DNA from: Octopus bimaculoides
Lineage: Eukaryota
Length of the DNA stretch: 58,361 nucleotides
Reading direction: 5' to 3'
NCBI RefSeq assembly: GCF_001194135.2
Contig: NC_068989.1
Coordinates: forward strand, 59,791,181 to 59,849,541
Both the position numbers and the translations under genes were made by a program. Positions 14,873 to 50,257 of the stretch are shown here, piece by piece (the first letter of the stretch is position 1; the number at the start of each line of letters is the position of its first letter). A model generated the notes under the pieces. That model saw nothing but the letters and a program-made list of their open reading frames with translations. It searched no databases and was not told where the DNA came from.

Positions 14873-15024
14873 TTAATACTTCTTGCATGAATGGATTATA
14901 TATGCTATAAAGCCTTTACGTTCCGCTTTTTTTTTAATACCAGCAAATATCATCCTCGTATCTGGCCAATATTGCTTTGGGTTGATCAAAAACTTCTCAA
15001 TTTCTTCAGGATAGAGAATGCGAC
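14873..15024 (-). CDS. last exon of cytochrome c-like gene (C-terminal cytochrome c half, Met80 retained)
   Basis: attttag|GT CGC...; [50 protein letters not shown]. 23/49 identical without gaps to the last exon of the cytochrome c at 47234-47382, with the same phase-1 intron position. Confidence 0.92.
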
Positions 15025-15060
15025 CTAAAATAATTAAGATGATATGAATATATATGCATT

Positions 15061-15099
<39 letters not shown>

Positions 15100-15652
15100 N
15101 NNNNNNNNNNNNNNNNNNNNNNNNNNNNNNNNNNNNNNNNNNNNNNNNNNNNNNNNNNNNNNNNNNNNNNNNNNNNNNNNNNNNNNNNNNNNNNNNNNNN
15201 NNNNNNNNNNNNNNNNNNNNNNNNNNNNNNNNNNNNNNNNNNNNNNNNNNNNNNNNNNNNNNNNNNNNNNNNNNNNNNNNNNNNNNNNNNNNNNNNNNNN
15301 NNNNNNNNNNNNNNNNNNNNNNNNNNNNNNNNNNNNNNNNNNNNNNNNNNNNNNNNNNNNNNNNNNNNNNNNNNNNNNNNNNNNNNNNNNNNNNNNNNNN
15401 NNNNNNNNNNNNNNNNNNNNNNNNNNNNNNNNNNNNNNNNNNNNNNNNNNNNNNNNNNNNNNNNNNNNNNNNNNNNNNNNNNNNNNNNNNNNNNNNNNNN
15501 NNNNNNNNNNNNNNNNNNNNNNNNNNNNNNNNNNNNNNNNNNNNNNNNNNNNNNNNNNNNNNNNNNNNNNNNNNNNNNNNNNNNNNNNNNNNNNNNNNNN
15601 NNNNNNNNNNNNNNNNNNNNNNNNNNNNNNNNNNNNNNNNNNNNNNNNNNNN

Positions 15653-15690
<38 letters not shown>

Positions 15691-17438
15691 CACACACACA
15701 CACATACTAACAGAGATACCTGGTATTACTCAGGATTAAAATAGTATAGTTTTTTACTGTTTTACTTGTTTCGGTCATGTGACTGCAGCCATGCTGGGGC
15801 ACCGCCTTAAATCAAAGAAATCAACCTCAAGGTTTATTCTTCATAAGCCTAGTACTTATTCTATTGGTGTGTTTTGCCAAACGGCTAAGTTACAGGAACA
15901 TAAACACAGCAACACTGGTTGTCAAGCGATAGCAGGGGAAGAAACAAAGACATACACACACACGCATATATATACACACAAACATACATATATATACATT
16001 GGAGGAAACACACCTTCAGCTCGTTTCATTAATTTCATCCTTTTTACTAATTTTAGTTATTGTTATTTTTTTCTCACCTACCAACAAACTCACTAGTTGA
16101 CAGCCACTTTACATGTGGTATGAACTATCACCCCACTTTGTATTTATTTTTATTTAACTTTAGACAATAATAGTAATAATAATACATTTATTTTTACATT
16201 TATAATAATAATAATAACAACAATGAGAATAATAACATTATAATATTATCTAAAATAACAATTATATCTAACTCCAACGCCAGTTGTTCACACTCTCTCT
16301 CCTTCTCTAGTTAGTACAGCAAGTTTAACCCCTGAAAAGTTATATTCGTAGAGTTTTAAGTATATTTATATATATTTACGTATATACTATCGATTTTGTT
16401 ATCGTAAGCATGTTTATTCTTATTATTTCATCATTTTATAGTTTTGTACCTTGTATTGCCATGTATTTAGTTTAATTACCGTAACTTAATATGATGCAAC
16501 ATTAATTTTCCTTCCTTATAAACGTTTATTTACATAATTAGTCATATATAAAGAATTCATTGGATTCTCTCCCTTCCTCCTTCCAATTACAATAAATTTT
16601 TATTACCATTATTATTAACTTTAAGATTTTTCTGCGGTTCATTATGTCTTCCTTTAATTTAAACTCTTAGGATAGCGTTCATAGCCTCTCTCCCTAAACA
16701 GCTCCCTGTAAACTAGCGTTCTTGTTTCTAACGGTCATTTAATTTAGCAATATAGTGTTATTCCTCATACGTAACCTTAGCGTTCAGCACAAGCCTTGCA
16801 TTTGTAATATGGTTCCCTGATGATGAAATTATATGTATATACCAGCATCTCTTACTTCTTTGGAGTAGTGTGCATATAATTTTNNNNNNNNNNNNNNNNN
16901 NNNNNNNNNNNNNNNNNNNNNNNNNNNNNNNNNNNNNNNNNNNNNNNNNNNNNNNNNNNNNNNNNNNNNNNNNNNNNNNNNNNNNNNNNNNNNNNNNNNN
17001 NNNNNNNNNNNNNNNNNNNNNNNNNNNNNNNNNNNNNNNNNNNNNNNNNNNNNNNNNNNNNNNNNNNNNNNNNNNNNNNNNNNNNNNNNNNNNNNNNNNN
17101 NNNNNNNNNNNNNNNNNNNNNNNNNNNNNNNNNNNNNNNNNNNNNNNNNNNNNNNNNNNNNNNNNNNNNNNNNNNNNNNNNNNNNNNNNNNNNNNNNNNN
17201 NNNNNNNNNNNNNNNNNNNNNNNNNNNNNNNNNNNNNNNNNNNNNNNNNNNNNNNNNNNNNNNNNNNNNNNNNNNNNNNNNNNNNNNNNNNNNNNNNNNN
17301 NNNNNNNNNNNNNNNNNNNNNNNNNNNNNNNNNNNNNNNNNNNNNNNNNNNNNNNNNNNNNNNNNNNNNNNNNNNNNNNNNNNNNNNNNNNNNNNNNNNN
17401 NNNNNNNNNNNNNNNNNNNNNNNNNNNNNNNNNNNNNN

Positions 17439-17473
<35 letters not shown>

Positions 17474-17480
17474 TATATAT

Positions 17481-17520
<40 letters not shown>

Positions 17521-20500
17521 ATATATATGTGTGTGTGTGTATATATATATGTATATATATGTATATGGGAGAATGTACGAAAAAAAAACAACAACAGACG
17601 AGGACAGGTGGTGTAAACAACAAAAGGATGTATTAGTTTGACGCTCAGGAATACAGAAAGTCTTTAACGTTTCGAGCTACGCTCTTCAACAGAAAGAATA
17701 TGGAGAAAAACACAGAGAAAAAAAAATGAATGGTGTTTGGTCAGCGATCTATCATATATATGTATGTGTATATATGTATATATATATATGTGTATGTGTA
17801 TATATATATGTGTATATGTATATATGTATATATATATATGTATATATATGTATATGTGTATATATATATGTGTATATATGTATATATATGTATATATATA
17901 TATGTATATATATATATATGTATATATATGTATATATATATATATGGGAGAATATACGAAAAAATAACAACAGACGAGGACAGGTGGTGTAAATAACAAA
18001 AGGATGTATTAGTATGACGCTCGGGAATACGGAAAGTCTTTGACGTTTCGAGCCACGCTCTTCAACAGAAAGAATACGGAGACACAGAGAAAAAAAATTG
18101 AATAGTGTTCCGGTAGGTGAAGGAAAGTAAAGGTAAAAAAAAGATGATAAAGGAGGTTTACAAAAGTGGAAAAGTTCAAAAGTTTTTTAGACGTCGTGGT
18201 ATATTGAAGCGATTTCCAATCAGAAGATGGGTCCAGTGTAATCCGTGGGTAGGAGAGGTGCAGCCGGAGGGTATAAAGTTCAGAATCAAACAGTCCAGAA
18301 AGAGTAGATCCAGAAGGAAAGAAGGTAGAATCCAAAAGTTCGTAGTGTGTGATGAGAGGAGACAGGATTAGCTGGTGCGACCACGTGAGCGTGTATTATA
18401 TGTGGGAGAATATACGAAAAAATAACAACAGACGAGGACAGGTGGTGTAAATAACAAAAGGATGTATTAGTATGACGCTCGGGAATACGGAAAGTCTTTG
18501 ACGTTTCNNNNNNNNNNAGTTTTTTAGACGTCGTGGTATATTGAAGCGATTTCCAATCAGAAGATGGGTCCAGTGTAATCCGTGGGTAGGAGAGGTGCAG
18601 CCGGAGGGTATAAAGTTCAGAATCAAACAGTCCAGAAAGAGTAGATCCAGAAGGAAAGAAGGTAGAATCCAAAAGTTCGTAGTGTGTGATGAGAGGAGAC
18701 AGGATTAGCTGGTGCGACCACGTGAGCGTGTATTATATGTGGGAGAATATACGAAAAAATAACAACAGACGAGGACAGGTGGTGTAAATAACAAAAGGAT
18801 GTATTAGTATGACGCTCGGGAATACGGAAAGTCTTTGACGTTTCGAGCTATGCTCTTCAACAGAAAGAATACGGAGACAAGGAGAAAAACACGGAGAAAA
18901 AAAAATTGAATAGGGATCAAGGGACCCAGTCAAAGGCTTTCTCGAAGTCTGCAAAAGCTAAGTATAGGAGTTTATCTTTCACTAGGTATTTCTCCTGCAG
19001 TTGTCGAACCAGGAATATAGCATCAGTGGTGTTTCTACCTGGCACAAAACCGAACTGCATCTCATCTAAGCAGCTTCTCTCTCTAATGAGATGGGCTATG
19101 ACCCTCTCTGTGACCTTCATCACCTGATCCAGCAGTTTGATACACCTGTAGTTATTTCTATCTAGAGCATCACCTTTACCCTTGTAGCAGTTGACTATGG
19201 TGCTGCTACACCAGTCATTGGGTATGACTCCACCATGAACTACCTGGTTTACAATGTGGGTGACTAGGCCATAGCTCACACCACCAGATATTTTAAGCAT
19301 CTCAGCAGTGATTCCTGATTGGCCGGGGCTTTTCCTAGCTTCGTACCCTTAATTGCTTTATCTACCTGGGAGCTGTCTATTCACATACCTGGTCTCTCTA
19401 TTGGGTCAACATTTGGCAGGCTCTCCTTCTCCCATTCATTCTCCAAGTTCAGCAGTCTTTCATAATAGCTTCTCCAAGCCTCTTTCTTTTCCAAATCATT
19501 AAAAGCAAGTGCACCATCATCCATGCAGACACATTTCCCTTCTGTGACATCACAATTTTCTCTCACACATTGTCTTGTAATCTGATCGAAAAATACCTTA
19601 GGAATGAGAACCCATGTTTGAAATTTCCCCAAGACACCTGATGAAGGCTGGAGGGTATATCAGCCGAAACGTATTAACATCAAACAAGATGAGTACAAAT
19701 ATCTGTCAAATGTAAATAATGTTCCCAGACAAGTTTTGTTGCACACCAACAGATGGCAGCACACAGTTGCATGTGCAGTGAGAGCTAGTAGTGACCTTCA
19801 TGAGGCAGTATGCCAAGTAACATTGCTGTGTTTACTTTGCAAGCTGTGAAATTTGTGTTTTTGTGATCATGTGAATGCTGTAGTCTGCAATTTTGCCATG
19901 GACTGGAACAAAGAGCCAATGTGAAATTTTCTGTTAAACTTGGGAAGTGTGCTACGGAGACATTGAGCATGCTTCAGCAAGCTTATGGCAATAAGGCAAT
20001 GGGTTGTACACAATGTTTTAAGTGGTATGGGCACTTCAAAAGTGGAAGAATATCCCGGGAAGATGATGAGCGATCTGGAAGACATGCAGCAAGTGTCACC
20101 TGGAAATGTGGTATTGTGTATCAAGAATTCGTCGAAGGCCAGACCATCAGTCATGAGTTCTACTGCAATGGTTTGAAGTATCTGATGGAGGACCCTCGGC
20201 AAAAGTGACCGGATCTGTGGAACGCGAATAATTGGATTCTTCATGTCAACAATGTACCCTGTCACTGAGCTCTCCTCACTCATGAGTTTCTTGCCAAAAA
20301 CAACATGGTATCACTTCCACACTCACCGCATTCCCCAGATTTAGCACCTGTGGAATTCTGTCTCGTCTCCAAAATGACAATGCAGCTCAAAGGTCGCTGT
20401 TGTTAAGATCCAAGTGAACTGCAGAAGGTCCTCAACCACTTATGGAAAACGACTTCCAGGCCAGATTCCAAAAGTGGCAGGAATGCTGGGTCTGGTGTAT

Positions 20501-23500
20501 TGCTGCACAAGATGGCTATTTAAAAGGAAATGATGTTAAAACTTACATAAATAGCCTATTTGTTTTATTAAACATAAATAGTCCAGGAACGTTTTGATAC
20601 CACCCCATAATTCACCATGGAAAATTTTTTTCCTTCAATTCTCACAATTGCTCAAATATGAAATCATATGATACTTACCATCCTTAAAGTTCTCAAAAGT
20701 TAATTTAAACCAAACATTTTGTACTAATTCTCCTTACATATATAGATCATATATGCTTTTAACATATTAAAATCTCTATCTTTCTTCATACCAGCATATA
20801 TTATCCTTGTAGAGGGTAAAAATTTCTTTGGGTTTTTCAAAAACCTCCTAAGTTCGTCATGTTGGTAAATATAACCTAAAAATGAATTTATATATAAATG
20901 TAAAAATTATATGTGCTTGTGTGTATATATATTGGGTTATCCCATAAATAATGCGGGTTTTTTTATACTTCTTTTATTTTTCAAAATTAAGATAAATGAA
21001 GTTCTTTTTCAATCTAAAATATACTCTCCTTCATTTTCTACAATGCTCTTCCATCTATCTGGTAGACTTGCAAGGCCCCTCTTCCAAAATTCACTTGTCT
21101 GTGATGAAAAATACTCCTCCAGTACTGTTCTGACCTCACTTACAGAATTCATATTTTTTCTGTCCAAATGATTTTGAAGACTGCAGAATAAATGATAATC
21201 GGATGGAGCAATGTCCAGTGAATATGGTGGGAAGGGCAAAAAAAAGTTTATTCATGAGACTTGACAGCAAAGAAGAGCACACATTTGCTCTCTGTCCATG
21301 ATTAGACTTGGAACCCATTGAGCCAATTTGATGATTTTTCCAATGACATGCAGGTGTCAATGACAGGTTGAATGACTAAATCCAAGCTTCTCTGCTAGTT
21401 CCTCAACAGTTACGATAAGATTTTGTTCCACCATGGTTTGCAGGACATCCTCATTGAGCTCTACAGATCTTCCAGGACATGGCTCATCTTCTAGGCTGTA
21501 GTTCTGGCTCAGAATTTCTGAAATCACTGTTGACACTGGTTTACACTTATTGTCCCATCCCCATATATCATCGTCATCATCATCCAGTGTTTTAAATCCG
21601 GGTTTGTCCCATTAATGGGGGTGACTGGATCTACCACAATGCCATAGCAACCGAGGTAGGCAGGTGCAGCCCATCCCAACCTTTGGGCTGGCTGGTGCCC
21701 ATTCTCCCTTGCTATCTTGAGGCTTTTTTGAAGCTGGATTTTCTGTAGGGAGCATGCCCTTGCTTACCCCCAACCTCAGTTTCTAGACATGAGTGGTCTT
21801 GAGACCAAAGCCTCTACCATGATTTTCAAGAAATGTAGTGGAAAACTAGCTCAGGAAGGCATAGATACTACTCCCTGAGACCCCTTTAAGTGCTCCCCTA
21901 CCTAATATACTGCATTAATATTCCTCACACTTTTCATTGTGTTGGTGCCTTTATTGAACTCATAAAGCGAAATAAGCTGAATATGCTCCTTTGTCACTAC
22001 CATTATAGCTTTGAAAAAAATAACCATTAAAATCAAACTGCACTCTTCAAAACTTGCACTGAGAATAAGTACAAGATAAGTTACTACCTGCTTTTACAGC
22101 AAGTTGATGCAGTTTATCCTGTCCCCTTCCAACTTTTAGTTCATGCAATTGAAAAAAACCACATTATTTATGGGATGACCCTATATATTGTTTATATCAG
22201 TGTCTACCCCTTGCACCCAAGTCTTTAAACCTTCCCAATAACTTATCTTTGTCACTTCCATTCCTCCATCACACTTCTAACTATGGCACTATCTTCTTAG
22301 TTGCTGTAATTATATGAGAATAGAATTGCACATATTTCATCCCTCATTTGTACTGCTGGTTACCCCCACCCCTTTGTCATCCATCATTTATTATTATCAT
22401 CATTGAGTGAGAGAACAGTACATGCCATCAAAGTAACACTGGGGTAAAATATACAAAGCCCAGTATACCCATCATGACTACCCATCTGATAAGGGTATAC
22501 CAGTATACCAGGCACATGCATCACAACCATATGTATGCGACATAGTGATCTCATTTTGAAGTAAGCAGTGCATGACCAGGTGGGGCCCAGTTAGAATTTT
22601 CTTCAGGTCAAATATCCTATTCCACTCTAAAGGTCCCTGAATAAGAGTTGTTTAAGGATGTTGAACAAAACACCCATGTTTCCAGAGGTGAATTATTCAA
22701 AATTCCTCTCAACTCGTGGCTATGATGCCCCCCACCACTACCACCATTGCTTTTGCTCATGATCAGAGATGCACATATGGACATGCTCAACTGGTTAAGG
22801 TCAGACAACTGACAAGCAAATTTGTGGTATTGAGCAGAATATTTGCTGTAGCCCATCTTTTATACCAAGACAAAACATGTACATGATAACACTTCCAATC
22901 AGCTAAAATCAGAAGCCACACCTGGTACTGCATCAGAGCATTTATTATTAACAATTATTCAAACCCCAAAGAATTCCTCTCAACACATGACTATGATCCT
23001 CCCCCACTACTTCTGCTCATGATCAGAGAGCAACATATTATTATTATTATTATTTTGGATTGGCTTAGGTTCAGTCTTATTCTTGGTAGGATTTATGTGG
23101 GTAGTGGGTTACTTCCTGTAACCTTAGGTATCCACAAGTCTTCAACAGTCTTTCAAGTACTTAGAACCCTCCTGAAAATCCTTGTTGTCCCTAAGAGACA
23201 AACTTTTTGTAGAAGCCCTACTGGGCATTCTATTCCAATTTCCTTCAGCCATCTGCTTACTGTTCCCAACACACCAATTATTATAGACACAAACCTTTAC
23301 TGTTCTCATACTCCAAATTCTTTGTATTTCAAATTTTAAGGGATTGTATTTTTTTAGCTTTTCATTTTTCAAACGGGCATGTTGAGTTGATCAGTAAGCA
23401 ACTTTGCTTTTCCTTATCTATAATTATTATGTCCAGTTCATTATTTTCTAACTTCTTGGCCATTTGAATAAGTGAGTCCCACAAAATCTTACATTTCTCC

Positions 23501-23716: not shown

Positions 23717-23782
<66 letters not shown>

Positions 23783-26700
23783 TTTAAAAGGATTGATGTA
23801 ACTCTTCACAAAAGTAAACAGTCAAGACACCAATAATAATAATAATAATATTCCTAAAAAAAAATAATAATAATAACATATACATTCATCTCTATTTTTG
23901 TTAGCAGTTGTATGTAGTATGTCAATATGTTTGTATGCAGTGTAAATTAACCATATATAAGCAAATTGTAAATACCTTGCAACTGCTGCAGTAATTATGA
24001 ATTGTTAATTGAACTTTAGATATGTATTATTGTATAACTTGGGCCTTCCACGTAATGGTTTTTTGTCAAGCGTTTCACCTCCAGCTGTTCTCATCACATG
24101 TGTATGTGTAGATGTATGTGTGTATTTAATAACATATGTAACAGGCGCAGAAACACACACACACTCACAGGCACACATTCATATACAAAATGTGATGATA
24201 CACACGCATACACTCTCACATACAGTCACATACATGTAGTAAGAGAGACACATACAGACATACATTCATGCATATCAGTTGTGACATGTGTATATGTATT
24301 TTTCATTTATATTTATATAAGGGCATTACTACAGAATAATGCCACACACTAGACTTCCAAAATAAACACATTTTTATCGAATGCGAGGAAAAGCAACTCT
24401 TAAAAGAAACCAACCTTTTTAATTGGAAGTCTAGTGTGTGGCATTATTCTGTAGTAATGCCCTTATATAAATATAAATGAATAAATATATTCTTGGGAAT
24501 AAAAAAATGATGGTTTTTTTTCCCTTATGAATTTTTTTCACGCTAGCTTCCTGATAAAATTCTTGTAAAAGATTTTTATCCCATTATTGAATTAATTGTG
24601 TATATGTATGTATAGATGTGTGTGTGTTTAATAATGTACCTAATGCGGAAATACACACACAGTCAGAAAAACATACACATTCATACACCCACACACATAC
24701 ATTCAGAGATACATACACACTCATATATGTGACATCGTCGTCATGATATAAAACATCCTTTACTATCTCATACGTATCGAACACGCAAACACACACACAT
24801 AAAGTGAAACAATACTCTTATCACATTAGAATTAAAAGTGAAAGAATAAAATTGCAACAATATTATATCACACAAAGAAGTTAATTTGTAGACAGAAATT
24901 ACAAACTCCATTTCAGCATATTAACTGTAGAAGAAAATAGGTTGGGTGAACAAACTTAAGCCACTTTAGGATATCTTTTTCTAATGCATGAATATTCAGT
25001 GGCATGGTTGAATTCTCATTGGTTAGTAATGAAGGCTTATCGGCTGTATCCCAACAGTTTTCAATAGAGAGGGAAATGTAAATAGTGTATTTAAATAGAC
25101 AGAGTGCAAAAAATTTTAAATAAGTAATGTTGTAGGGGGAACATACAAATAGCATGATGACAGAGATATTTACACACGACAGAGAGAGAGAGAGAGAGAG
25201 AGTGAGTGAAAGAAACAGACATAGACTTAAAGAGGGAGAAAGAATTGCAGAGGATGTAAATGAGAAAGAAAAGAGATAAACAGAGAGAGAAAAGGGAGAG
25301 AATTGTTTGAACACTGCAGAAGTCAAAGAGAGAGAATCGGTTGGAAACTGCAATTTTTACAGAAAAACTCATGTGAAAAACCTAGTCAGTTTCTCACATT
25401 ACATGGGAACTCTGGGCAAAATGTTATAGTCCATGACTATCCTTGGCACGTAAGTAATGTGTGTGTAAAGTTTGGTAAAAATTGGTTGAAAACTGTAGAA
25501 ATACATACATACTACACACACACAAACATGCACACACACAAACATGCACACACACACACAAACATGCACACACACACACATCCTTTGTTTTATATATAGA
25601 TGTCAAAAATTATTGATATTGCAAGCTAAACTAATATAGCAAAATAGTAGAATAGTCTAAACAAATGCAAACTTCTGACTAAAATTTCAAAATTAAAGAA
25701 TAATTACCCATGTGTGCATCATCTACGATATACATCAAACCAGTATCTTCATCAGTCTCACCACATATAATCAGTAGATATGGGCTTAAACGTTTATATA
25801 ATTTCTCACCAGCTTTCAAAATCCTCCTAAAATGTAGATGATGGTGAACAAAAGTGAGGACATATATTAAACTTAAAATAAAGATTCTCTTTAAAACTAT
25901 TTGCAAACTAAAAACAAATTGAAATTGTATTGAATAATTTCTCAACAGTATTTCCATATAACTTGTGATTTATTCCAGCAGTCCTTCTTATAAATGTAAA
26001 GCAAGACGGTTTATCTTAATTTTCTACTACATAAAAAAATACTTAAACATTATATCTCATATTTTATATTCAAATATTCTGAAATTAGTTTTTTGTAAGT
26101 GTGGGCTAGAGACAGAGACAGAGATACAGAGCATCTATGGGACATAGATGGCTAGACAGACAGATAGAAAGGCAGTCAGGTTATTCAAAAGTAACACATT
26201 TTAAAGAATCCTTTCTAAAATTAGACCAACACAAGTATTTGCAGAAGGCCTTCTGTAGGAAAGACTAAGACATTCCTAAAAGTCAGAATAGTAAAACATG
26301 GAAAGCCTTAATGAGAGGAGAAACATTTACGTCAGGAATAGCTGAATGTACTTTTCTAAAAATAAAGTTAAAAATCTGGAAAATTATCACTCTTTTTTTT
26401 AAGCGCATTGAAGTTGTCATCTTCAAATATATTATACAATTGTTCAAATATAAAATTGTATTCTTCAGAGCTTAAAAATCTTATTTCTTACTGTTGTGTT
26501 GCTCTCTTAAAAATGGTATTTCCATCTGCAGTTCCCAAACAGGTATCTGAAGCAGCAATAAGATGAGAAAATTTGAATTATTATCATATCAAGGACAGGA
26601 ATGTTTTCTTTTATTACATTATGATAGCATCATTGATTAGTAGAGTTTAAAGGTGATGAAATTCTTGCAAAATATTTTTGAATAGACAAAAGGCCATCTT

Positions 26701-29700: not shown

Positions 29701-30143
29701 CTTACTGTGTGGAGGTTGATGTCTCGACTGATGGAGTTAAAAGCATTCTTAAGGTCAAGTTTGAGGATCACCTTTGCGGACTCAGAGGGCAAATTGGTGA
29801 AAGCCCTGGTGGCATAATACAGTTATCAATTAAAGAGTTATCAACCCCTCTTCCATATAGATGCTGTCACTTGAACAATTTGCCTTAAATGTCAACCAAT
29901 TAACTTTATAAATTTAGTCAAGTTTGTCTACTATAGAGAGACAAGATAATTAATGTTTTGAGCAAAACCATTTGTCTTTGAAAAAAAAACAAGTTTGTAA
30001 ATGTTTATAATAAAACTGAGAATATAACATTCAATAACTCTATCCCAGAAACTTTATCTACTGCTAAACAAATACTTGTATTATAGTTACTTACCAAAAT
30101 TTATGACCATGCAGAGAAATACTGCTAAAACAATGAGCTTCAT
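14873..30143 (-). CDS. signal-peptide-bearing, haem-motif-less cytochrome c-like protein, 124 aa, four coding exons
   Basis: complement(join(14873..15024,25708..25826,26492..26546,30095..30143)); GT-AG introns, phases 1,2,1, one open frame: [124 protein letters not shown]. Confidence 0.82.
17560..18900 (-). mobile_element. Penelope-like element 3' end with tandem pseudo-LTR units
   Basis: unit gggagaatatacg...ttcaacagaaag repeated at about 17566, 17947, 18403 and 18740; C-terminal-like [23 protein letters not shown]; the copy across the 10-N gap may be artefactual. Confidence 0.6.
18037..18073 (-). ncRNA. minimal type I hammerhead ribozyme motif (variant core CUGUUGA); further copies 17661-17697 and 18832-18868
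   Basis: minus strand UCUUU-CUGUUGA-A-GAGC gug GCUC-GAAAC-GUC-AAAGA: stem I UCUUU/AAAGA, stem II GAGC/GCUC, GUC cleavage triplet, palindromic ACGU stem III. Confidence 0.65.
18915..19610 (-). mobile_element. RTE LINE reverse transcriptase fragment
   Basis: [35 protein letters not shown]...[24 protein letters not shown]...ADFEKAFD. Confidence 0.9.
19633..19678 (+). ncRNA. degenerate Penelope-type hammerhead motif (relic also at 52243-52285)
   Basis: gacac-CTGATGA-a-ggctg..cagcc-GAAAC-gta; the stem I partner is eroded. Confidence 0.5.
19718..20610 (+). mobile_element. decayed mariner transposon
   Basis: [23 protein letters not shown]...[22 protein letters not shown]; PHSPDLAP motif; TIR-like end gtccaggaacgttttgataccacccca. 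Confidence 0.85.
20929..21570 (-). mobile_element. second mariner fragment (C-terminal half plus TIR)
   Basis: [22 protein letters not shown]...[23 protein letters not shown]; TIR tattgggttatcccataaataatgc. Confidence 0.88.
23090..23700 (-). mobile_element. R4/Dong-like LINE C-terminal fragment (zinc-knuckle region plus restriction-like endonuclease)
   Basis: AAQDQ...[27 protein letters not shown]...KILWD...[17 protein letters not shown]. Confidence 0.75.
23705..23780. repeat. (ATT)n microsatellite
   Basis: long pure ATT run; other microsatellites include (TG)n 30661-30737, (AG)n about 35834-35868 and (TA)n flanking N gaps. Confidence 0.95.
24302..24481. repeat. perfect 59-bp inverted repeat with 62-bp spacer
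   Basis: 24302-24360 is the exact reverse complement of 24423-24481. Confidence 0.95.
25708..25826 (-). CDS. internal exon of cytochrome c-like gene (N-terminal half without CXXCH)
   Basis: attttag|G AGG...ATG G|gtaatt; phase 2 to 1, as in the CXXCH exon of the neighbouring gene. SPYLLIICG aligns to GPNLSCLIG and GLMY to GFAY. Confidence 0.82.
26492..26546 (-). CDS. 55-nt internal exon ([19 protein letters not shown])
   Basis: cttattgctgcttcag|AT...CA|gtaaga; phase 1 to 2, bridging the flanking exons in frame. Confidence 0.75.
27505..27715. mobile_element. SINE family with atcgaccc.gaaaggatgaaaggcaaagtcgac core
   Basis: related copies at about 30300-30510, 32455-32670 and 54228-54470. Confidence 0.65.
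27990..29890 (-). mobile_element. decayed CRE-clade (RLE) non-LTR retrotransposon
   Basis: RT motifs [34 protein letters not shown]; RLE domain [25 protein letters not shown]...[11 protein letters not shown]. Confidence 0.8.
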
Positions 30144-35831: not shown

Positions 35832-35871
<40 letters not shown>

Positions 35872-36473: not shown

Positions 36474-39400
36474 CAAATAACAAGTGTGTAACTTGAGAGA
36501 GATTTTGCTGCTACTCCTGATGGGTTGAATGACCGTAGAGGCTCTCTCTGTAAGCTCTGCTTGAGTACAACAAAACCCCACTTGGACAACCCTCCCCTAG
36601 GACAAAACCCCCATAGTTAAAGTGTGAAAGTGGACAAAACCCCCTTGGTTATATTCTTAGTTTTTTTCCCCTTTTTAATTGTTTCAGTGATCAAACTGTG
36701 GCCATGCTAGAGTACTGCCTTGAAGAATTTTTTTGTTGAACCCCAGAATTTTTTTTTCCTTTTTTCTTATTGCAGTTATTAGACTGCAGTCATGTCAGGA
36801 CACTATCTTGAAGAATTTTTAGACAACTGTATTGAACCCAGAATTTTTTTTAAGCCTGATCAAAACCACCTCAGTGATATACTTCTTTTTTTTTTTTCTC
36901 TTTGTACTTGTTAAATCGTTAGATTCCGGCCATGTTGGGGCACCGCCTTGAAGAATTTTTAGTTGAATGTATCAACCCAAGAATTTTTTTTTACGTAATT
37001 TTCAACCAGCACATGAAGTTAAGCCAAGAAGGTCTTTCCACTTGCTAGAAACAATAGCCAAATCTCTTGANNNNNNNNNNNNNNNNNNNNNNNNNNNNNN
37101 NNNNNNNNNNNNNNNNNNNNNNNNNNNNNNNNNNNNNNNNNNNNNNNNNNNNNNNNNNNNNNNNNNNNNNNNNNNNNNNNNNNNNNNNNNNNNNNNNNNN
37201 NNNNNNNNNNNNNNNNNNNNNNNNNNNNNNNNNNNNNNNNNNNNNNNNNNNNNNNNNNNNNNNNNNNNNNNNNNNNNNNNNNNNNNNNNNNNNNNNNNNN
37301 NNNNNNNNNNNNNNNNNNNNNNNNNNNNNNNNNNNNNNNNNNNNNNNNNNNNNNNNNNNNNNNNNNNNNNNNNNNNNNNNNNNNNNNNNNNNNNNNNNNN
37401 NNNNNNNNNNNNNNNNNNNNNNNNNNNNNNNNNNNNNNNNNNNNNNNNNNNNNNNNNNNNNNNNNNNNNNNNNNNNNNNNNNNNNNNNNNNNNNNNNNNN
37501 NNNNNNNNNNNNNNNNNNNNNNNNNNNNNNNNNNNNNNNNNNNNNNNNNNNNNNNNNNNNNNNNNNNNNNNNNNNNNNNNNNNNNNNNNNNNNNNNNNNN
37601 NNNNNNNNNNNNNNNNNNNNNNNNNNNNNNNNNNNNNNNNNNNNNNNNNNNNNNNNNNNNNNNNNNNNNNNNNNNNNNNNNNNNNNNNNNNNNNNNNNNN
37701 NNNNNNNNNNNNNNNNNNNNNNNNNNNNNNNNNNNNNNNNNNNNNNNNNNNNNNNNNNNNNNNNNNNNNNNNNNNNNNNNNNNNNTGTATATATATATAT
37801 GCATATAGGGGTACAGGATGTCACAAAATGTAAACAACATGAAATGCGTAAACATGGAATACAAACTTTTGTATGCAAACAACGAAAGAAACAAATGGAA
37901 ACAAGACTCAAAATGTGGAAAAGATGAACAGCCGACAACTGATGAAGGGTCGTTCTTTATGTTACTTGTCTTGTTTTCCATTTGTTTTTTTCATTCTTCA
38001 CATACAAAAGTTCATATTCCAGGTTTGCGTATTTCATGTTGNNNNNNNNNNNNNNNNNNNNNNNNNNNNNNNNNNNNNNNNNNNNNNNNNNNNNNNNNNN
38101 NNNNNNNNNNNNNNNNNNNNNNNNNNNNNNNNNNNNNNNNNNNNNNNNNNNNNNNNNNNNNNNNNNNNNNNNNNNNNNNNNNNATATATATATATATATA
38201 TATATAAGGTGTAGAAGTGGCTGTGTGGTAGGAAGCTTACTTCCCAACCATGTGGTTCTGGGTTCAGTCCCACTGCATGGCACCTTTGGCAAGTGTCTTC
38301 TACTCTAGCCTCAGGCTGACCAAAGTCTTGTGTGTGTTGTTCTGAGTCATGACACAAGTTTGATCTATCAACTCGCTCACAGGGCATGGTGTGGATACCC
38401 AGCAGCTGCTACAAACTTATTGAGATGTGATCAGGAAATTCAGTCACAAAGGCCAACCTCACAACACTCTTTATTGCCTTGCAGGAAATCCCTGCTAAAG
38501 CCACCAATCTCCTAATCTCACTCACATAGTCATCGACCTGTTTTCTGGTCTACCTCATGCTTCTGAGCTTACTATACACCTTAAAGGCTCCCTCCATGCA
38601 AGCAACTTTCAGCTGTTCCTCGATCTTTTTAATCTTTTGCTGATCATCTTCTGACATCTCTAGATACAAGCTCAGCACACTACCTTCTAAATACAACGGT
38701 AGGAGGCTGGCTATGTCTTGTATCCTCTGCTATTTTGCTACTAGCTTCACCTCCTTTATCCAGGACACCACATCGCCTTGGCCGGAGAATGGTCTCAACA
38801 TGATGTTGCCAAGTCTAATTTTCAATGCCATATTTTACCATGGACATTAGATTGGGTTTTTTTTTGGATGCTATGCAATGAGCCAAAATAGCTTGTGGTA
38901 TGAAGGGGAAATTAGGAAAAAGGAGAATTGAGGCTTTCTTACCAGTCGATTTGGAGTGAACATTCTCTCACCACCCAAGTAGTCATTTCCTTCTGTTGAT
39001 TGTACACACACATCTTGACTTCATGCTGTCTGGCTGCACTCTGCCCTCTTCCTGTCTCTGCTGCACATGCTCTCTTCAGCACTTCTGTCCTCAGGGACTC
39101 ATGACAAGGCCTACCCACTCTCCCACTTCTGCCTTCACCACAGCTTCAACTTAATACCACAAGGGTGAAGAAAAATTAAAGCATACAAACCAATCAGGCA
39201 TAGGGTCAAGGTTTAGGATTCGCTGGCTATGGCTAAAGGCCAAAGGGAGGTGGGGGCAGAAGTACATAGAATTTAGGGGTATTCTGTGGATATTGGTTGA
39301 AAGTTGGGTAAGGGTACGAAGGCAACTGAATAATAAGATCATACTTTTATGGAATTGTAGTGTTAGTAATAGTGGAGTACTCACTCGTAAGAGGTTTGGA

Positions 39401-40079: not shown

Positions 40080-41900
40080 AAAGTGGATATGATATTTTGT
40101 CTAAACAATTGCACCCAATGTTATTATGACATAATAGTTCGAGCTTGTGAGAGTTACTGGTGTTTGCATAGTTGTTGCTGAGGTTTATATTATGATCAGT
40201 TGACAGAGATGAGCTTTCAAGGCTAATCTTCTTTGTTTGTACATTTCAGCAGGGATAGATTCAGAATCAGGAACCTTGTTGTCACACTTCTGCCAGATGA
40301 CAGTGTCCAGTTTCTTTGATTCAGAGGTGCTGACACTCACAACTACTTGAGGAATGTGGGAAGATCAACACAGCATTTATCAGAGGCTGCTGATAGTCTG
40401 TTCAAGGAGTTGTTGAAATGTTCAGTCCAGCAGCTTAAGATTGTTTTGTCTTCAGTCAAAATACTGCAACATTCAGCTTTCCTGGGCATTAGTACTGCCT
40501 TCACAGGTCTGTGATTCAGACAGCAGAATAGAAGTTACACATATGATGTTAATCAGCATATCGTTGGTTAAATTCTACAGATTTATATTTGAACATCAGC
40601 CCTAAGATGTTGATAGTTGTATCCCTTGGTTACTGCTTAAATATTGTATCTCTAGTAAGTCTTTCAGAGATTTTCAGTGAGATGAATTGGCAGATTTCAA
40701 TGTTAATTCCATTGAATCAGCTGATCTCTGTGGAAGACCAAAATAAAAAGCTGTAGGTGCAGTTATCTCCCTTGAGGGTGACTGCCAAAATAGCTGTTCA
40801 CTAGAGGGAACATGCAACACTATGGTTCGGACACTTACCCCTTCCTCCTTTGCGTTGAGATGCTGGAGCATAAAGACATGACCAAGCTACCTTTCATACA
40901 CATGCGGCAGCTAGCAGACACCAAACAGACATGAGATAATGCACTGAAGAGTTAACAAATGAAGGCCATGTTCATCAAACTCTTTCCATTATTATTCAAC
41001 TTGTGTATATTTGAGACCTTGAATAAAGGTGTTTAAAGTTACAGCTTTGTTTTTTGAATTCATTGTACCATGTTCCTTCATCAAATGACATATTACAGCC
41101 TTCTGAACAGAGTCATCATTAGATGGTTTCACAACGTGAGACTATGACCATCTAAAATGGTGACCCCGATGCAGCACACACACCACAACATTCTAGACTA
41201 CAATTCCTTTCAAAATGGTGACCTTCCTCGGATGAATTTTTTATCTGTGAATACATGCTTTCCTTTTTATCCTTTCCAACTTTGTCTACATGGCTAAACC
41301 GCCATTCATTGTGTAAGAACATACCACTGATGTCTCTCTCATCACCATATTGTCTTCTCTACCAAAATTTTGGTGCCATTTTCAGGTGGGAACTGCACAT
41401 CATTTTGTAACTGAAATTACGACCTTGTCCTTCTAAGACACAGCTTTCCAGGAGAATTTTCTTCTTTTTACATGCAAGAAGTATATTTAACAGTCAATGT
41501 TATCTAGAATTTGCACAGATAACAATTCTTCCTACAAACCAGGTACGAGTTTCTCTCTCTCAACCCCACCCGGATTATCCATGTGTTGGCCATTGTTTTG
41601 TTCTCCTTCTGTTAGCAAGGACTTCTCCCATTTCACCCTCTGCTGAAAAAATTCCTAGTTCAATGCTCATTGTATCTTCTTTCAACTAGGGTGTTTGACT
41701 GCCATTTCTAACGGTGTTTCCTTCAACCAGCTTGTTCTTCATGGCATTCCATTTCTTATTATCGTCTAAAGATGGGTCCAATTTAATACCTCTGTAATTA
41801 TTTCTATCTAAGGCATCACATTTACCATTGTAGCAGCTGATTATGGTGAATCATCATCCATGCAGACACATTTCTCTCCTATGACATCACGATTTTATCT
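40080..41900 (-). mobile_element. patchwork of decayed LINE fragments
   Basis: includes the RTE motif [20 protein letters not shown] near 41780-41840; otherwise heavily frameshifted. Confidence 0.45.
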
Positions 41901-42454
41901 CACACATTGTCAGGCAATTTGATCTCACTCTCTCTCCATATATATATATATATCCTATTTTGTGTCTGGTTTATACATTTTAATTTAAGTTTTGAAATAG
42001 AAATCTATGGACTGAAATGAAATCTGATAGAATGAATTGGCTAGTAGTTATTCAAGGTGCATAACTCTGTTCCACCTGAGAAATAAATTTCATAAAACAT
42101 GCAAGCCTCTATATAATTGTTGTTTGTTTGAAGAAACAGCCAAATCTCCCTCAAATGATATCCAACAGTCTTAAAAGGGATATACTGGGTAACGTGGCCT
42201 GGGCTCCCTGCACTCAAGACGTTGGGATTAAAAGCATTTCGACTATTAATCAACAATTCTGTTGATTCAAGACTGATCAACAACTAAACAGCGATACAGG
42301 TTTCAGTCGTACTTGAAACACCGTTAGAAATGGCAGTCAAACACCCTAGTTGAAAGAAGATACAATGAGCATTGAACTAGGAATTTTTTCAGCAGAGGGT
42401 GAAATGGGAGAAGTCCTTGCTAACAGAAGGAGAACAAAACAATGGCCAACACAT
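41581..42454. repeat. perfect 140-bp inverted duplication
   Basis: 41581-41720 is the reverse complement of 42315-42454. Confidence 0.92.
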
Positions 42455-45400: not shown

Positions 45401-47187
45401 TGGTGACAAAGATGTGTTGGAACATGCCCTCGAAGAACATTGGGGATAATGAGAATAAGCATGGTGATACAGAAGTTTAGACAAGTTGGGTAGGCAGGAT
45501 AGAGGTGCCTGAGGCAAATGATGGCATGAAATATAGGAGAGGCTCAAGGACAGGGGTTGTGGTAGGTATGTGAGGACACTGAGGGTGATAGCAAATAAGG
45601 TGTTAATGATGGAGAACAGCATAAAGGCGAGAAGGCACAGAAAGGTGACTGATAGAGACAGTAGGCAGGGAAGATAATGGGAAATGAAAGTGGTTCAGGG
45701 AGGAGAAGGAGGAGGTAACTGAGGAAGCAGTGGAATGTAGTATACACCTATTCTGCTCTCAGGTGATAAAGAAGTGATAGGTGTTAGGGGAAATATTTAA
45801 CAGGACAGAGAGAATGCAGGTGGGTATGGGGCAGATAAAATACAGGTGTGCATGGGACAGAGCCCCTCACAGACAAGCATAAGGTGGTTTGGGATATCAA
45901 TTCTGCTGTGGTGAACAGGTCTTCTTGAGTACAGCAAGGCACCAGATATTTCCGCCCTTTTGTCATCTTGTTTGTAAGGCTCAGTGTCTTGAGACTGGCC
46001 TTCAGTACTTTGTCTTATGTTTTGGCTCTCCTTCTTCCATGCATTCCATCTACTTTAAGTGATTAGTACTTCTTTATTCATACATATCACATGAACAAAC
46101 CAGTGCAGTCTTCTCTCTTGCAAATTGCATGTAATTCTTCTCGTGCCTAACTTATCTCTCAATACACTAATAGTCTGTTGTACATATACACTGACAATGA
46201 ACATCCAGCAGTGCATATTAGCTTCAGTCCGCTCTAGTATTCACATGTCCTCTGCATTCAGGGCTCATGTCTCACTAACATGTAGCATTGCACTTCATAC
46301 AATCTTTCTTTCACCTGGAGAGAGAGACCATTGGTTGCCAACAAAAGTAAAAAACACTAAATTTTCTCCATCTTATCCTTAATCTAGCAATTATAGTTTC
46401 AGTACATCCTCCCCCACTGCTAATTAGGCCCCCTAGGTAGCAGAAATTATCCACTATCTCTAAAGAGCCTTAGGGACATTTGAGTTAAATCCATTTCCTG
46501 AGCATTTGTAGTCTTTATGGTTCTTGTGTATCTTCTACATACAAACACCACTTTCTCAGATTGGCCAGTTAGAGTGCTAAAGGGTTAAGGCCCTTTGATT
46601 CCAAGTTTTGCTTCCACATCTGGAATATGAAATTATAATGGATAGCTGTAGAGGAAAAATACACACAAGGATAAAACAGTTATTTGTTATGCATTTAGAA
46701 ATATTTTTCTGATACATTTGAGAGATAATTAACTGATAGAATTTTGAGTAAATAAAGAAGTTTTTATGCCCCTACAAAGACAATGACCATGGCTGGGATG
46801 CTTTCCATAACAGATCTGTTTGTTCAGGGATGATCTGGGATTAAACAACAATGGGTATCATTTATAATCAAATGATCACAAAGTAGGGTCTTGAGTGAGA
46901 GCTGGGTTAATTTATACTCAGGCTTAATTTAATCTTGTAAATCGAATTTTCAAAGTTGGCTTCTGTTGATTCTAGATAGAGGGATCAACTATAAATGACA
47001 TATACTGTTATTCACAATACTGATATATGCAGTTACTCCGAGATCTTTTTTTTTTTTTCCAATGGTTTTAAAAAGAAAAGGTTGAATATAGTCTGTGATA
47101 TTTTCCTGCAATGTTCTTAGAATGTAATTTTTACAATATTTTATGAGACATACAAACCAAACAAAATCAAATTATATTTTTGCCTAT

Positions 47188-47193
47188 TTTATT
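47188..47193 (-). terminator. candidate polyadenylation signal of cytochrome c gene
   Basis: AATAAA on minus strand about 40 nt after TAA. Confidence 0.55.
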
Positions 47194-47233
47194 ATCTAAT
47201 CCTATTATTTTGAGATCACTAAGTCAATTGTCA

Positions 47234-48458
47234 TTATGATTTACAGCATTCCTCCAGATAGGCAATAACATCAGCTCGTTCTTTTTCTCTCTTAATACCT
47301 GCAAATATCATCTTTGTGCCAGGAATGTATTCCTTGGGATTCTTCAGATAAATAAAAAGAGTCTCCCTTGTCCAAGTAATACCTAGAAAATACAGATAAA
47401 AAGAAAGTCAATAATTTTGTTACACACCATTTACTAAGATTCTTAAACAGAATATTTCTAATAGAAAGAAAAAGAATATTATGAAATGTTAAAAAGAGTG
47501 AATAAATTGGCAGAGATGACTAGCAACTTGCTGTGCAGAGCAGGTTTGCTTGGAAGTGCAGGCAAGGTAAAAATGGACATTAAAATTGCATATATCAATA
47601 TTTGCTTATTTAGCATTCATTTTTTCCATGCCAGCACAAGTTTGAATGAGTACACATAATATTTACAGTTAGATTCTCTTTCTGTCATTAACCCTCACAG
47701 GTTTCCTTATACCATGTCTCTGAAAACAGAGAACTAGAGGATGATTTTTTTCTTATTTTTTTTGTTGATAGAAAATGTCAACAAACCTCAAAGTACTATT
47801 TAGTTCAAGACTTTTCATACAAAGTGAGTAATATGTCTACTGGTTTCAGTGAAAAAGCAATAGTTGGTCTGTCACTAATTCATTTCTAGCAATTATGTCC
47901 CCTTCCTTTCAGAGTTTATAACAATTACTAAATTTCCATTCAAATTTCATATTTTTTTTTTCCATATGGCAAGCTTAATGCCACTTATGTAATTTCCCAT
48001 TGCCCATCCTATTTTCCAATTTTATTCGTCATGCTTCCTGACGTTGTATGACATTTTGCGTACTAAGGAAGTACTAATAAGTTCTCATTTCATTTGTTGA
48101 GATATGGTACACCATTTCATAGGACTGAATCAGATAGGTGAAATTTTAACGCATGACTTACAAATAGAGGCCAATTTTGCTAAAACATACAATAAACAAC
48201 ACACACATATATATTATATATTCACAGAACTGTCAGAACACTTAGTAAAGAGCCAAGAATTCTCCAGTAACACTTACCTTTGTTTTTATTGGCATCGGTG
48301 TAAGCAAAGCCAGGTGCCTGGCCAGTTTTACGTCCTATCAGACAAGACAAATTTGGTCCAGTTTTGTGCTTTCCACCACAATCTACTGTATGGCACTGAG
48401 CACAGCGCTTGACAAAAATGCTTTTACCCTTAACTGCATCTCCAGCAGGAATTGGCAT
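47234..48458 (-). CDS. CYC: cytochrome c, divergent cysteine-rich paralogue (109 aa from the ancestral Met)
   Basis: complement(join(47234..47382,48278..48458)): [119 protein letters not shown]59, Y67 and M80 are present; phase-1 GT-AG intron. Confidence 0.96.
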
Positions 48459-48875
48459 CCTAGAAATAAAAATATGCCAAGTCAATATAAATTGTTATAA
48501 ACTTTAAAATAATTAATGAATTTATCAAATTTAAATATAATAAACTGAATGAAATTTGCATATCTTCAAACCAAATAATGTTCGTGATTTTGTGCATCTA
48601 ACTGGAATTTCATAACATAAAATAAAATTCATTTAATGCTGAGTACATTAAATGTGAGAATCATAGTTTTATTGAATTTTACCTTATATTATTTTTTTTT
48701 TTGGAAGTGTGTGTATATGTATATATATAAAATTAATATGAACAGCAGTTTGCAATGTCTCACCAAAAGGAGAATTACATATGTCATTAAATGCAACTAG
48801 GGGGTCAGAAAACAACTGCTTTCATTCCTAAGATATGTTACTGATGTTATTTTTTTTTTTGATATTATTTTTCAA

Positions 48876-49600
48876 GTCCTTGCCTGGGATTGAACTTAGA
48901 ATCCGAGGGTTAGTAGCCCGCACTCTTATCCACTATGCTATATGCATGTGGGCAATTATAGAGTGAATTTTAGGGCTTATAAACCTAGTATTTTATCTTT
49001 TCTTAACACTGGTTCCCATATTACTTTCATATCAGCACTAAGTCTGCTAAGGAGGTTATTGTGTCCTAGCATATGTGCAGCATCTTTTAATTTTTGTATT
49101 TTCCAGTGATGTTCTCTGTCCATTATTTTAACTTCATACTACAGTGGGAGGTGGTCTCCGTTTTCCCATACATGATCGGCTATACCTGATTTTTCAACAT
49201 CCCCTCATGTCACAGTTTTACGATGTTCCTCTACCCTCACTTTAAGTGGGTGGAATGTTTCACCTTTGTATAACCTACAACAACTGCATGGGATAAAGTA
49301 CATGCAGTTTTTGGTAATATTCTCTTCCATGTGTAGTTTTACTCAGAGAAGATATTTGAAAAGTGTTGTATTACTTCTGAATACTGTCCTGATGTCATAT
49401 GGACCGCATATCTTTTGTATGAAGCCTTTGACATAGGGTAGACAGACTGTGCTCAGTTTATGGGCTTCATCCTCTCTCTCCTCTTCCTAACAGGAGTGGA
49501 TAGTATATTTTCTGAATAGTTGTTGCACAGTAGATTATTTCTTAGCCTGATCATTTCTTTGTGGCGTGTATCAGGATCACTACTTATAGTCTTTGCTCAA
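48876..49600 (-). mobile_element. Penelope-like element 3' part (GIY-YIG region plus tRNA-like segment)
   Basis: reverse-complement homologue of 51530-52230. Confidence 0.75.
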
Positions 49601-50203
49601 TGTTTTAGGCACTGACCAATCCCTCTCTTTACTCTTTTACTTGTTTCAGTCATTTGACTGCAGCCATGCTGGAGCACCGCATTTAGTCGAGCAAATCGAC
49701 CCTAGAACTTATTCTTTGTAAGCCTAGTACTTATTCTATCGGTCTCTTTTGCCGAACCGCTAAGTTACAGGGACGTAAACCCACCAGCATCAGTTGTCAA
49801 GCCTGAAAGAAGCAAGCTCCCATTTAGAGGTGCATGAAACTTCTAAGTCACAGGGAGCTGAATCAAAATGTTTCAAATATTATATATCAGTTGTATCAAT
49901 GACATAGCTACGCTGACTGTACAGCAACCCTCTAATCTAACACACAATGCTTAGTCCATACCAATTCAATAAGTTTCATTGCTATAAAGGTCCTTTCATG
50001 TGACTGAAGGAGAGAGAGCAGAGAAATGTTTCTTTCATCAAAATGACACCACTACTTTATCTTCCTCTCAAACAAGAGCCTTTCATGTTAGATTTTTCAA
50101 TCTTCGTAGCAACTGAACTTAGTAAATCCTTCTAAGGATTCTTCTCATGACTAAATGGTCTCAACACAAACCATCATCAGCTTATTCAAATTCTAGAGTT
50201 TAC

Positions 50204-50257
50204 CTCAAATATGCTACTCCCACAAATGACAAGTTAGCCAACAATAAGAGCATTAAG
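50204..50257 (-). CDS. candidate leader exon of the cytochrome c gene (MLLLLANLSFVGVAYL-R)
   Basis: atattttacag|cttaATG...TTGAG|gtaaac; ATG 50253-50251. The phase-2 end joins the acceptor at 48459 (G ATG CCA) in frame. Confidence 0.5.

Follow-up and report, generated by a model that had tools for sequence, protein, structure and literature searches.

Two cytochrome c-family genes, termed gene 1 and gene 2, are present on a 58,361-nucleotide (nt) stretch of DNA from Octopus bimaculoides (NCBI RefSeq assembly GCF_001194135.2, contig NC_068989.1, positions 59,791,181 to 59,849,541 of the forward strand; referred to here as the window and numbered from its first letter). It is probable that gene 1 is an ordinary mitochondrial cytochrome c that carries no leader and that gene 2 is an octopod tandem paralogue which has turned into a different, putatively secreted, haem-free protein. 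The original prediction, made from the letters of the window, was of a stepwise retargeting series leading from a canonical cytochrome c, through a leader-bearing, Cys-rich form encoded by gene 1, to a secreted haem-less form encoded by gene 2. Its finding of two same-strand genes about 17 kb apart was correct, gene 1 ending at ~46690 and the gene 2 leader starting at 30149, and tblastn of the window located all of the cytochrome c-like pieces on the minus strand. Gene 2 does appear to bear a leader and to have lost the haem-attachment segment, as was claimed, the N terminus being signal-like and the predicted product containing no CXXCH motif. The series as a whole was not upheld: the appearance of a series arose from a chance intronic open reading frame (ORF) in gene 1 and a missed exon in gene 2, and there is no leader-bearing intermediate.

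The coding pieces of gene 1 are as follows.
48459 to 46690, minus strand: gene 1, cytochrome c, XP_014772787.1, 109 amino acids (aa), start Met at 48458.
48278 to 48459, minus strand: first coding exon of gene 1, 182 nt; a single G, then 60 codons from the ATG at 48458 that include CAQCH, then the first base of the Gly56 codon.
46690 to 47382, minus strand: last exon of gene 1; coding sequence (CDS) 47382-47234 (GITW...EECCKS, then stop) and 3' untranslated region (UTR) to ~46690.

The first coding exon lies in the context AG/G ATG CCA ... AAA G/GT (slashes mark splice borders), with TTTCTAG/ as the acceptor and /GTAAGT as the donor, and matched horse and fly cytochrome c in tblastn searches with E values of 1e-27 to 8e-29. 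An exact look-up of the spliced product returned XP_014772787.1, "cytochrome c [Octopus bimaculoides]", and the genome annotation for gene 1 consists of the 109-aa CDS only. The product scored 50.6 bits on Pfam PF00034, for which the curated cutoff is 21.3, and contains CXXCH with His18 (CAQCH, residues 19 to 23 of the 109-aa product). Met80 (PGTKMIFAG), Trp59, Pro30, Arg38, Tyr48, Tyr67 and Pro71 are all retained, the exception being Gly34, which is Cys in Octopus species. There is no cleavable presequence, the transcripts and RefSeq both placing the start at the Met just before the conserved N-terminal helix. Identity was 85% to the cytochrome c of Argonauta hians and 94% to that of Octopus sinensis, and the ratio of nonsynonymous to synonymous substitution rates (dN/dS) between the O. 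bimaculoides and O. sinensis genes was 0.36. No other Octopus cytochrome c was present among 2231 database hits (annotated proteins), and a 126-aa leader-bearing form of gene 1 was absent from ~15 billion proteins; hence, gene 1 is most likely the housekeeping mitochondrial cytochrome c of O. bimaculoides. The separate canonical cytochrome c that had been expected elsewhere in the genome was not found among these hits, and gene 1 starts at Met 48458, an outcome that the original prediction had named as contradicting it.

The Cys at horse position 34 of Octopus cytochrome c (residue 39, window 48344-48342) lies within NLSCLIG in O. bimaculoides and NLYCLIG in O. sinensis, and this position is Gly in 23 of 23 other aligned animal sequences, Argonauta included. 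Octopus cytochrome c also has Cys-Cys at 102-103, and that of O. bimaculoides has Cys22 in addition. If true, a disulfide or redox role of Cys34 with Cys102/103 would be unusual in a housekeeping cytochrome c. The gene 1 protein was unlisted in the first homologue search, as a WDR24 protein is the representative of its 90% cluster. The same link was seen in an O. vulgaris model (CAI9728438.1, 880 aa) in which WDR24 without its last exon is fused in frame to cytochrome c at the G ATG acceptor (...VKRL/MPIPAGD), and it is because of this link that cytochrome c was clustered under a WDR24 representative. The fusion represents either read-through transcripts or an annotation merger, and it places WDR24 upstream of gene 1 on the same strand, beyond 58361; no WDR24 exons were detected in the window.

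The supposed leader of gene 1 lies almost entirely within a segment that is missing from a related species.
50204 to 50257, minus strand: candidate leader of gene 1 (MLLLLANLSFVGVAYL), 54 nt; intronic, not an exon.
49896 to 50252, minus strand: 357-nt segment present in O. bimaculoides and absent at the syntenic O. sinensis site; it holds the ATG and the whole ORF of the candidate leader.

Two spliced transcript contigs from public RNA runs (L003 and L004) contained both gene 1 coding exons with the intron removed. L003 matched the window at 100% identity in the first coding exon and at 99.9% in 47384-46690, the two being directly joined; L004, from a different Octopus species, was ~95% identical to gene 1. 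Before G ATG, both contigs read ...TTAATATACAAG/GATGCC and not the ...GCATATTTGAG/GATGCC of the candidate leader. The frame before Met 48458 is TAA TAT ACA AGG ATG in these contigs, giving an in-frame stop four codons upstream, and the 94-nt 5' UTR of L004 contains no ATG. This 5' exon was not found in the window, nor in the 10 kb upstream in O. sinensis and Argonauta; the true non-coding first exon of gene 1 is, therefore, >9.9 kb upstream and outside the window. The syntenic intron of O. sinensis (L005) aligned up to 50253 and resumed at 49895 (blastn; sequences compared by eye). In Markov-shuffled sequence, a mean of 17 in-frame ATG mini-exons was obtained per 9.9 kb, of which 3 were hydrophobic (mean 3.0, with P = 0.9 for at least one), compared to 12, of which 4 were hydrophobic, in the real sequence. 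A leader exon on gene 1 was rejected due to the use of another 5' exon in the transcripts, the location of the ORF in an indel absent from O. sinensis, and the chance-level frequency of such ORFs. Gene 1 is, hence, not the leader-bearing, Cys-rich intermediate that had been proposed, the transcripts having a non-coding 5' exon with an in-frame stop. The paired leaders of the original prediction do exist as mini-exon-like sequences at 50257-50204 and 30149-30095, both containing an ATG and encoding 16 largely hydrophobic residues, but they are not equivalent, one ending in phase 2 (54 minus 4 nt) and the other in phase 1 (55 minus 6 nt). With different phases and different downstream exons, the 54/55-nt parallel between the two genes is a coincidence.

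The pieces of gene 2 are listed below.
30149 to 14373, minus strand: gene 2, LOC106871044.
30095 to 30149, minus strand: signal-peptide exon, 55 nt; GAAATC, ATG, 15 codons and G, leaving in phase 1.
26492 to 26546, minus strand: exon overlooked in the original prediction, 55 nt, phase 1 to phase 2, beginning within a D codon and ending within a Q codon; located by tblastn of XP_014772793.
25708 to 25826, minus strand: 119-nt exon, AG/G AGG ATT ... ATG G/GT(AATT), with an invariant Cys56 and no CXXCH.
20724 to 20875, minus strand: proximal alternative last exon, 152 nt coding, isoform X2 (XP_014772793); the Met80 position is Ile.
14873 to 15024, minus strand: distal alternative last exon, 152 nt coding, isoform X1 (XP_014772792); 75 nt from the gap at 15100-15652.
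14373 to 14437, minus strand: third annotated terminal exon, isoform X3, 95 aa, not cytochrome c-like.

In the mRNA models of gene 2, the signal-peptide, 55-nt and 119-nt exons are followed by either of two duplicated last exons that are mutually exclusive. Using canonical AG/GT sites and including the exon at 26546-26492, the gene 2 exons gave all three RefSeq isoforms exactly (XP_014772792/3/4); the 119-nt exon joined to 20875-20724 matched XP_014772793 (auto-named "cytochrome c isoform X2", 124 aa) at 100%. The additional exon is needed because the 55-nt leader, which has 6 nt before its ATG, ends in phase 1, such that a direct join to the 119-nt exon is out of frame; this join reads ...NFGGF and then a stop. 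The direct splicing of leader to 119-nt exon in the original prediction had, therefore, omitted an exon. As the signal-peptide exon has an acceptor, a 5' UTR exon is located further upstream. The signal-peptide exon is identical across isoforms X1 to X3, and 15 of its 16 residues are the same in O. vulgaris, while the exon at 26546-26492 encodes the predicted signal-peptide cleavage region and a family-invariant IFKRA and is conserved in O. vulgaris and Argonauta. Orthologues of the 119-nt exon were detected in O. vulgaris (locus L008, 20132-20263) and Argonauta, of the proximal X2 last exon in O. sinensis and O. vulgaris, and of the distal X1 last exon in O. vulgaris (L008, 34861-35010). The X1 and X2 last exons are 43% identical to each other. 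The counterpart of the X3 exon in O. vulgaris contains two in-frame stops, and the X3 terminal exon is probably not a conserved coding exon. There are, thus, three cytochrome c-like last exons in the window and not the two counted previously, 15024-14873 being an alternative exon of gene 2 rather than part of a separate gene.

Alignment of the gene 2 family with cytochrome c by hhalign gave probabilities of 98.6-98.9% and E values of 1e-15 to 3e-17, with nearly all of the signal coming from the last exon. As originally described, the 182- and 119-nt exons are each entered by a single G and left in phase 1 inside the Gly56 codon (G/GT at 48278 and 25708), and the two genes have the same last exon including Cys102 (tblastn E values of 3e-9 to 5e-11; hhalign E value of 3e-17). 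A non-coding first exon, a second exon starting just before the ATG and an intron inside Gly56 are, however, the standard layout of animal cytochrome c genes, as in rat and human, and the shared architecture is this layout instead of a special link between gene 1 and gene 2. Taken together, the homology, the shared Gly56 intron and the tandem position make common descent of gene 2 with cytochrome c secure. The last exons of the family show 40-43% identity with every animal cytochrome c and no more than 54% with those of cephalopods; hence, the origin of the family is not placed by identity. An AlphaFold model of the gene 2 product, generated with cytochrome c rows in the alignment, had a moderate predicted local distance difference test score (pLDDT) of 72.9. 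Its best PDB matches were all mitochondrial cytochromes c, with the C-terminal 38-57 residues superposing at 1.7-3.0 Å.

In Octopus, the N terminus of the gene 2 product consists of MK, 14 hydrophobic residues and DTCLG/T, with small residues at -3 and -1 relative to the predicted cleavage site; in Argonauta, that of the family is MKLFLFLTLLCLTVSLHFILVDA/E, i.e., MK-LFLFLTLLCLTVSLHFIL-VDA/E (both by eye). In both genera, this looks like a classical cleavable Sec signal peptide with an n/h/c layout and a core of at least 10 residues. The predicted mature protein is 103-108 aa (~103 in O. bimaculoides) with an isoelectric point (pI) of 9.0-9.7, compared to 108 aa and a pI of 9.4 for cytochrome c. 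It contains exactly two cysteines, both invariant, one being at the position-102 site used in cephalopod cytochromes c. CXXCH is absent from every gene 2 isoform and orthologue, and His18 is also gone. Trp59 is replaced, and Met80 is present only in O. bimaculoides X1, the other last exons having Ile, Leu, Val or Lys. None of four family members matched PF00034 at an E value of ≤1. Across six family sequences there are 35 invariant columns, including the two mature cysteines, IFKRA and YLL. Every family member has the IFKRA motif just after the predicted cleavage site; the motif could be a relic of the cytochrome c motif IFVKRCA or a dibasic KR pro-peptide site releasing a 10-residue N-terminal peptide.

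The haem segment of gene 2 may have been either deleted or substituted. The original prediction was of a 63-nt in-frame deletion, with AGG as a decayed ATG; the AGG and the exon lengths are as described, while the deletion is one of two readings. On this reading, 63 nt would have been lost within a homologous exon, removing the haem segment, and AGG would be the old ATG; in its favour, GCTGGNGA (A-G-D/E) is, by eye, equally far from the acceptor in both exons. On the other reading, the 55-nt and 119-nt exons (174 nt) would together represent the ancestral 182-nt exon after the gain of an intron within it, with the motif substituted. MAFFT and full-length hhalign choose the latter, for which the mature length is equal, and shuffling tests of it gave P values of 0.005-0.05 in O. 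bimaculoides and 0.13-0.47 in Argonauta. Piecewise hhalign was equally weak for both placements (7.8 versus 9.8). These data do not decide between deletion and substitution; under both, the predicted gene 2 protein is without a haem site.

The range of the family was examined in annotated proteomes by phmmer against 1.84 billion representatives and by a profile search of a 5.8-billion-sequence set. Three clusters scored >125 bits with phmmer, and the rest scored ≤69 bits; the profile search recovered only proteins of O. bimaculoides, O. sinensis (LOC115216643), O. vulgaris and A. hians (149-240 bits), the next match being at 50 bits. No member was detected outside octopods in these annotated proteomes, and the claim of a lineage-specific family was borne out, with matches only in Octopus and Argonauta. 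The synteny check that had been proposed at CNOT9 was also informative: the family is always located between cytochrome c and CNOT9, with a gene matching the Rcd1 Pfam family adjoining it in O. bimaculoides, O. vulgaris and Argonauta. As the family occupies this same position in Octopus and Argonauta, the gene 2 paralogue is older than the split between these genera. All five coding exons recur, with their order unchanged, at the gap-free O. vulgaris locus. In A. hians, three or more complete, compact units come after cytochrome c, each with a signal peptide, an equivalent of the 55-nt exon, a middle exon and a last exon; beyond them is CNOT9, on the other strand. The Argonauta copies, together with the CNOT9 exons of the window, are as follows.
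A. hians L001, 18159-19563, and L006, 728-2690 and 10001-13390: paralogue copies, one with a second last exon.
1115 to 8656, plus strand: 3' exons of CNOT9 (Rcd1), convergent with gene 2; six exons, tblastn E values of 1e-13 to 6e-19.

The Argonauta copy number is a lower bound, a 6.8-kb stretch between the two loci lying outside the comparison, and the query for CNOT9 was the human protein. An annotated Argonauta model of 188 aa (P0258) joins exons of two different copies. The introns of Octopus and Argonauta no longer align at all.

Estimates of dN/dS were obtained for the following regions and pairs.
Gene 2 mature region, O. bimaculoides versus O. vulgaris: 1.1 (dN 0.18, dS 0.165).
X2 last exon, O. 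bimaculoides versus O. vulgaris: 1.7.
X1 last exon, O. bimaculoides versus O. vulgaris: 1.0.
Gene 2 signal-peptide exon, O. bimaculoides versus O. vulgaris: 0.11.
Argonauta paralogue pairs: 1.45-1.7; the closest pair has 5 nonsynonymous and 0 synonymous changes.

Gene 2 is favoured to be a functional, fast-evolving, putatively secreted protein rather than a decaying duplicate, since reading frames, splice sites and the 35 invariant columns have persisted while the introns no longer align. That it is instead a transcribed but functionless duplicate in decay, with the signal-like N terminus and the alternative last exons being annotation noise or neutral, is unlikely. Such a duplicate would account for dN/dS values of ~1.0-1.7 between species and among the Argonauta copies, for the missing Pfam match, for the failure to find a transcript contig and for the X3 exon not being coding in O. 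vulgaris. It would not, however, be expected to have uninterrupted ORFs with AG/GT borders in each of O. bimaculoides, O. sinensis and O. vulgaris, as well as in three or more Argonauta copies, when introns are unalignable between the genera, nor 35 invariant columns in six sequences, a signal-peptide exon with a dN/dS of 0.11, and orthologous last exons of the X2 type in O. sinensis and O. vulgaris and of the X1 type in O. vulgaris. Less likely again is a gene 2 product that is not extracellular and haem-free, due to an uncleaved anchor, an organelle-targeting signal or non-covalent haem binding. X1 does keep Met at the Met80 position, and the C-terminal half is predicted to be cytochrome c-shaped, but the n/h/c Sec layout with small -3/-1 residues occurs in both genera and there is no amphipathic basic presequence. 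In addition, no member retains His18, Trp59 or either of the haem cysteines, and last exons other than X1 have Ile, Leu, Val or Lys in place of Met80.

The least probable explanation, and a highly improbable one, is the stepwise series itself, with a canonical cytochrome c elsewhere, gene 1 as a leader-bearing Cys-rich intermediate, gene 2 as the secreted haem-less form and the 54/55-nt leaders spliced directly. Both mini-exon-like sequences have AG/GT borders, that of gene 1 is in frame with G ATG, and gene 1 has extra cysteines (C22, C34 and C102-C103, horse numbering), all as such a series would have it. The gene 1 transcripts, however, use another 5' exon with an in-frame TAA, the gene 1 leader ORF is inside the 357-nt indel absent in O. 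sinensis, and ~3 hydrophobic in-frame mini-exons are expected by chance per 9.9 kb. The gene 2 leader is in phase 1 and needs the exon at 26546-26492, a direct join stopping after 3 codons, and neither the 126-aa form (15 billion proteins) nor another Octopus cytochrome c (2231 hits) was detected. Several observations also weigh against an ordinary gene 1 and a functional, secreted, haem-free gene 2 product. The whole-chain template-modelling (TM) score of the gene 2 model was only 0.43-0.49 (E = 0.08), the C-terminal half alone fitting well, and the model depends on the cytochrome c rows, as family sequences by themselves gave a pLDDT of 43. A dN/dS near 1 is also expected of a decaying gene, and the counts are small, with no significant excess over 1. 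A transcript contig for gene 2 was not found, its splicing being taken from the annotation models of RefSeq, the original genome, O. vulgaris and Argonauta and from cross-species conservation. The status of gene 1 as the sole cytochrome c derives from annotated-protein matches and not from a genome scan, and clustering hid gene 1 itself in those matches.

Under the preferred explanation of an ordinary gene 1 and a diverged gene 2, a tandem duplication in the octopod lineage would have given rise to gene 2, placing it between cytochrome c and CNOT9. The signal peptide would send the nascent chain into the endoplasmic reticulum (ER), where it would never meet holocytochrome c synthase, an enzyme of the mitochondrial intermembrane space, and would stay haem-free. 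The two invariant cysteines may then form a disulfide stabilising what remains of the cytochrome c fold, mainly the C-terminal half, and the small, basic protein may be secreted and serve in extracellular binding or signalling. Diversity in the C-terminal half would have come from alternative last exons in Octopus and, in Argonauta, from tandem gene copies. We infer the secretion, cleavage, haem absence and disulfide of this protein from its sequence. A further suggestion, which is tentative and somewhat doubtful, is that a cytochrome c duplicate has become a haem-free, disulfide-stapled, secreted scaffold with a C-terminal half swapped or multiplied under diversifying selection, and thus a new extracellular recognition or signalling family.

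The window corresponds to O. bimaculoides chromosome CM046609.1 (GCA_001194135.2) at ~59.8 Mb, the locus being 100% identical and the proteins matching exactly. It has a G+C content of 36% and six runs of N. The chromosome-level record carries the same gaps, which, therefore, stay unfilled. Those near the two genes are listed below.
15100-15652, 16884-17438 and 18508-18517: gaps between the two alternative last exons of gene 2.
37071-37785 and 38042-38183: gaps between gene 1 and gene 2.

No exon overlaps any gap, and the CDSs assembled from the window equal the RefSeq proteins exactly. The suspicion that further copies might be concealed in the gaps received no support from the gap-free O. 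vulgaris locus, where the set of exons matches and no extra copy is present. The 10-N gap at 18508-18517 is bordered by perfect direct duplications (18181-18507 and 18518-18844, 327 bp, 100% identical), as is that at 7148-7157 (6853-7147 and 7158-7452, 295 bp, 100% identical). Both gaps are, therefore, unmerged overlapping contig ends and not missing sequence, with ~300 bp artificially duplicated at each. An inverted repeat (41581-41720 and 42315-42454, 140 of 140 bp matching, arms ~600 bp apart) is present in the intergenic region between gene 1 and gene 2 and may represent paired transposon ends or an artefact of assembly. Blocks richer in G+C (42-46%) are located at ~10000-13200 and 18917-19300 (minus strand) and at 27989-29042. 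ORFs that look like fragments of non-long-terminal-repeat retrotransposons occur at 12623-13144 (endonuclease-like) and 18917-19300 (reverse transcriptase-like), and further ORFs are found in the first coding intron of gene 2 (the 27989-29042 block).

Databases auto-name gene 2 products "cytochrome c-like", and literature searches by accession and on an octopus "cytochrome c-like" secreted protein returned no paper on the gene 2 paralogue. The present analysis corrects the record in that the Octopus housekeeping cytochrome c is without a leader. Cytochrome c is a textbook case of extreme constraint. The gene 2 family, if correctly interpreted, would show recruitment of a housekeeping redox fold to an extracellular job, with an ER signal gained, the haem ligands lost, and the C-terminal half kept and then diversified, and would be one more gene family specific to a cephalopod lineage, with an origin that can be traced.

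Gene 1 is like the mitochondrial class I cytochrome c (CYCS, PF00034) in every tested respect. Gene 2 is like CYCS in its phase-1 intron at Gly56, its last exon (NPK..P.T....AG.KK......AY...CK), the position-102 cysteine, its length and its charge, and it adjoins its parent gene. It differs in having a predicted signal peptide, an extra coding intron, alternative last exons and a near-neutral or faster rate of evolution, and in being without CXXCH, His18, a conserved Met80 or Trp59, and a Pfam match. By analogy only, the octopod family resembles fast-evolving, lineage-specific secreted families derived from recruited housekeeping folds, such as venom and reproductive proteins, in its added signal peptide, tandem expansion, dN/dS of ≥1 and conserved cysteines on a variable surface. 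To our knowledge, the known cytochrome c duplicates keep haem and stay in mitochondria. The testis Cyct of mouse and rat and cyt-c-d of Drosophila keep the haem motif, a mitochondrial location, and electron-transfer or apoptotic functions. They share with the octopod family an origin as lineage-specific duplicates of a single-copy housekeeping cytochrome c with a specialised role, whereas the octopod family appears to have lost the haem site and to have gained an ER signal.

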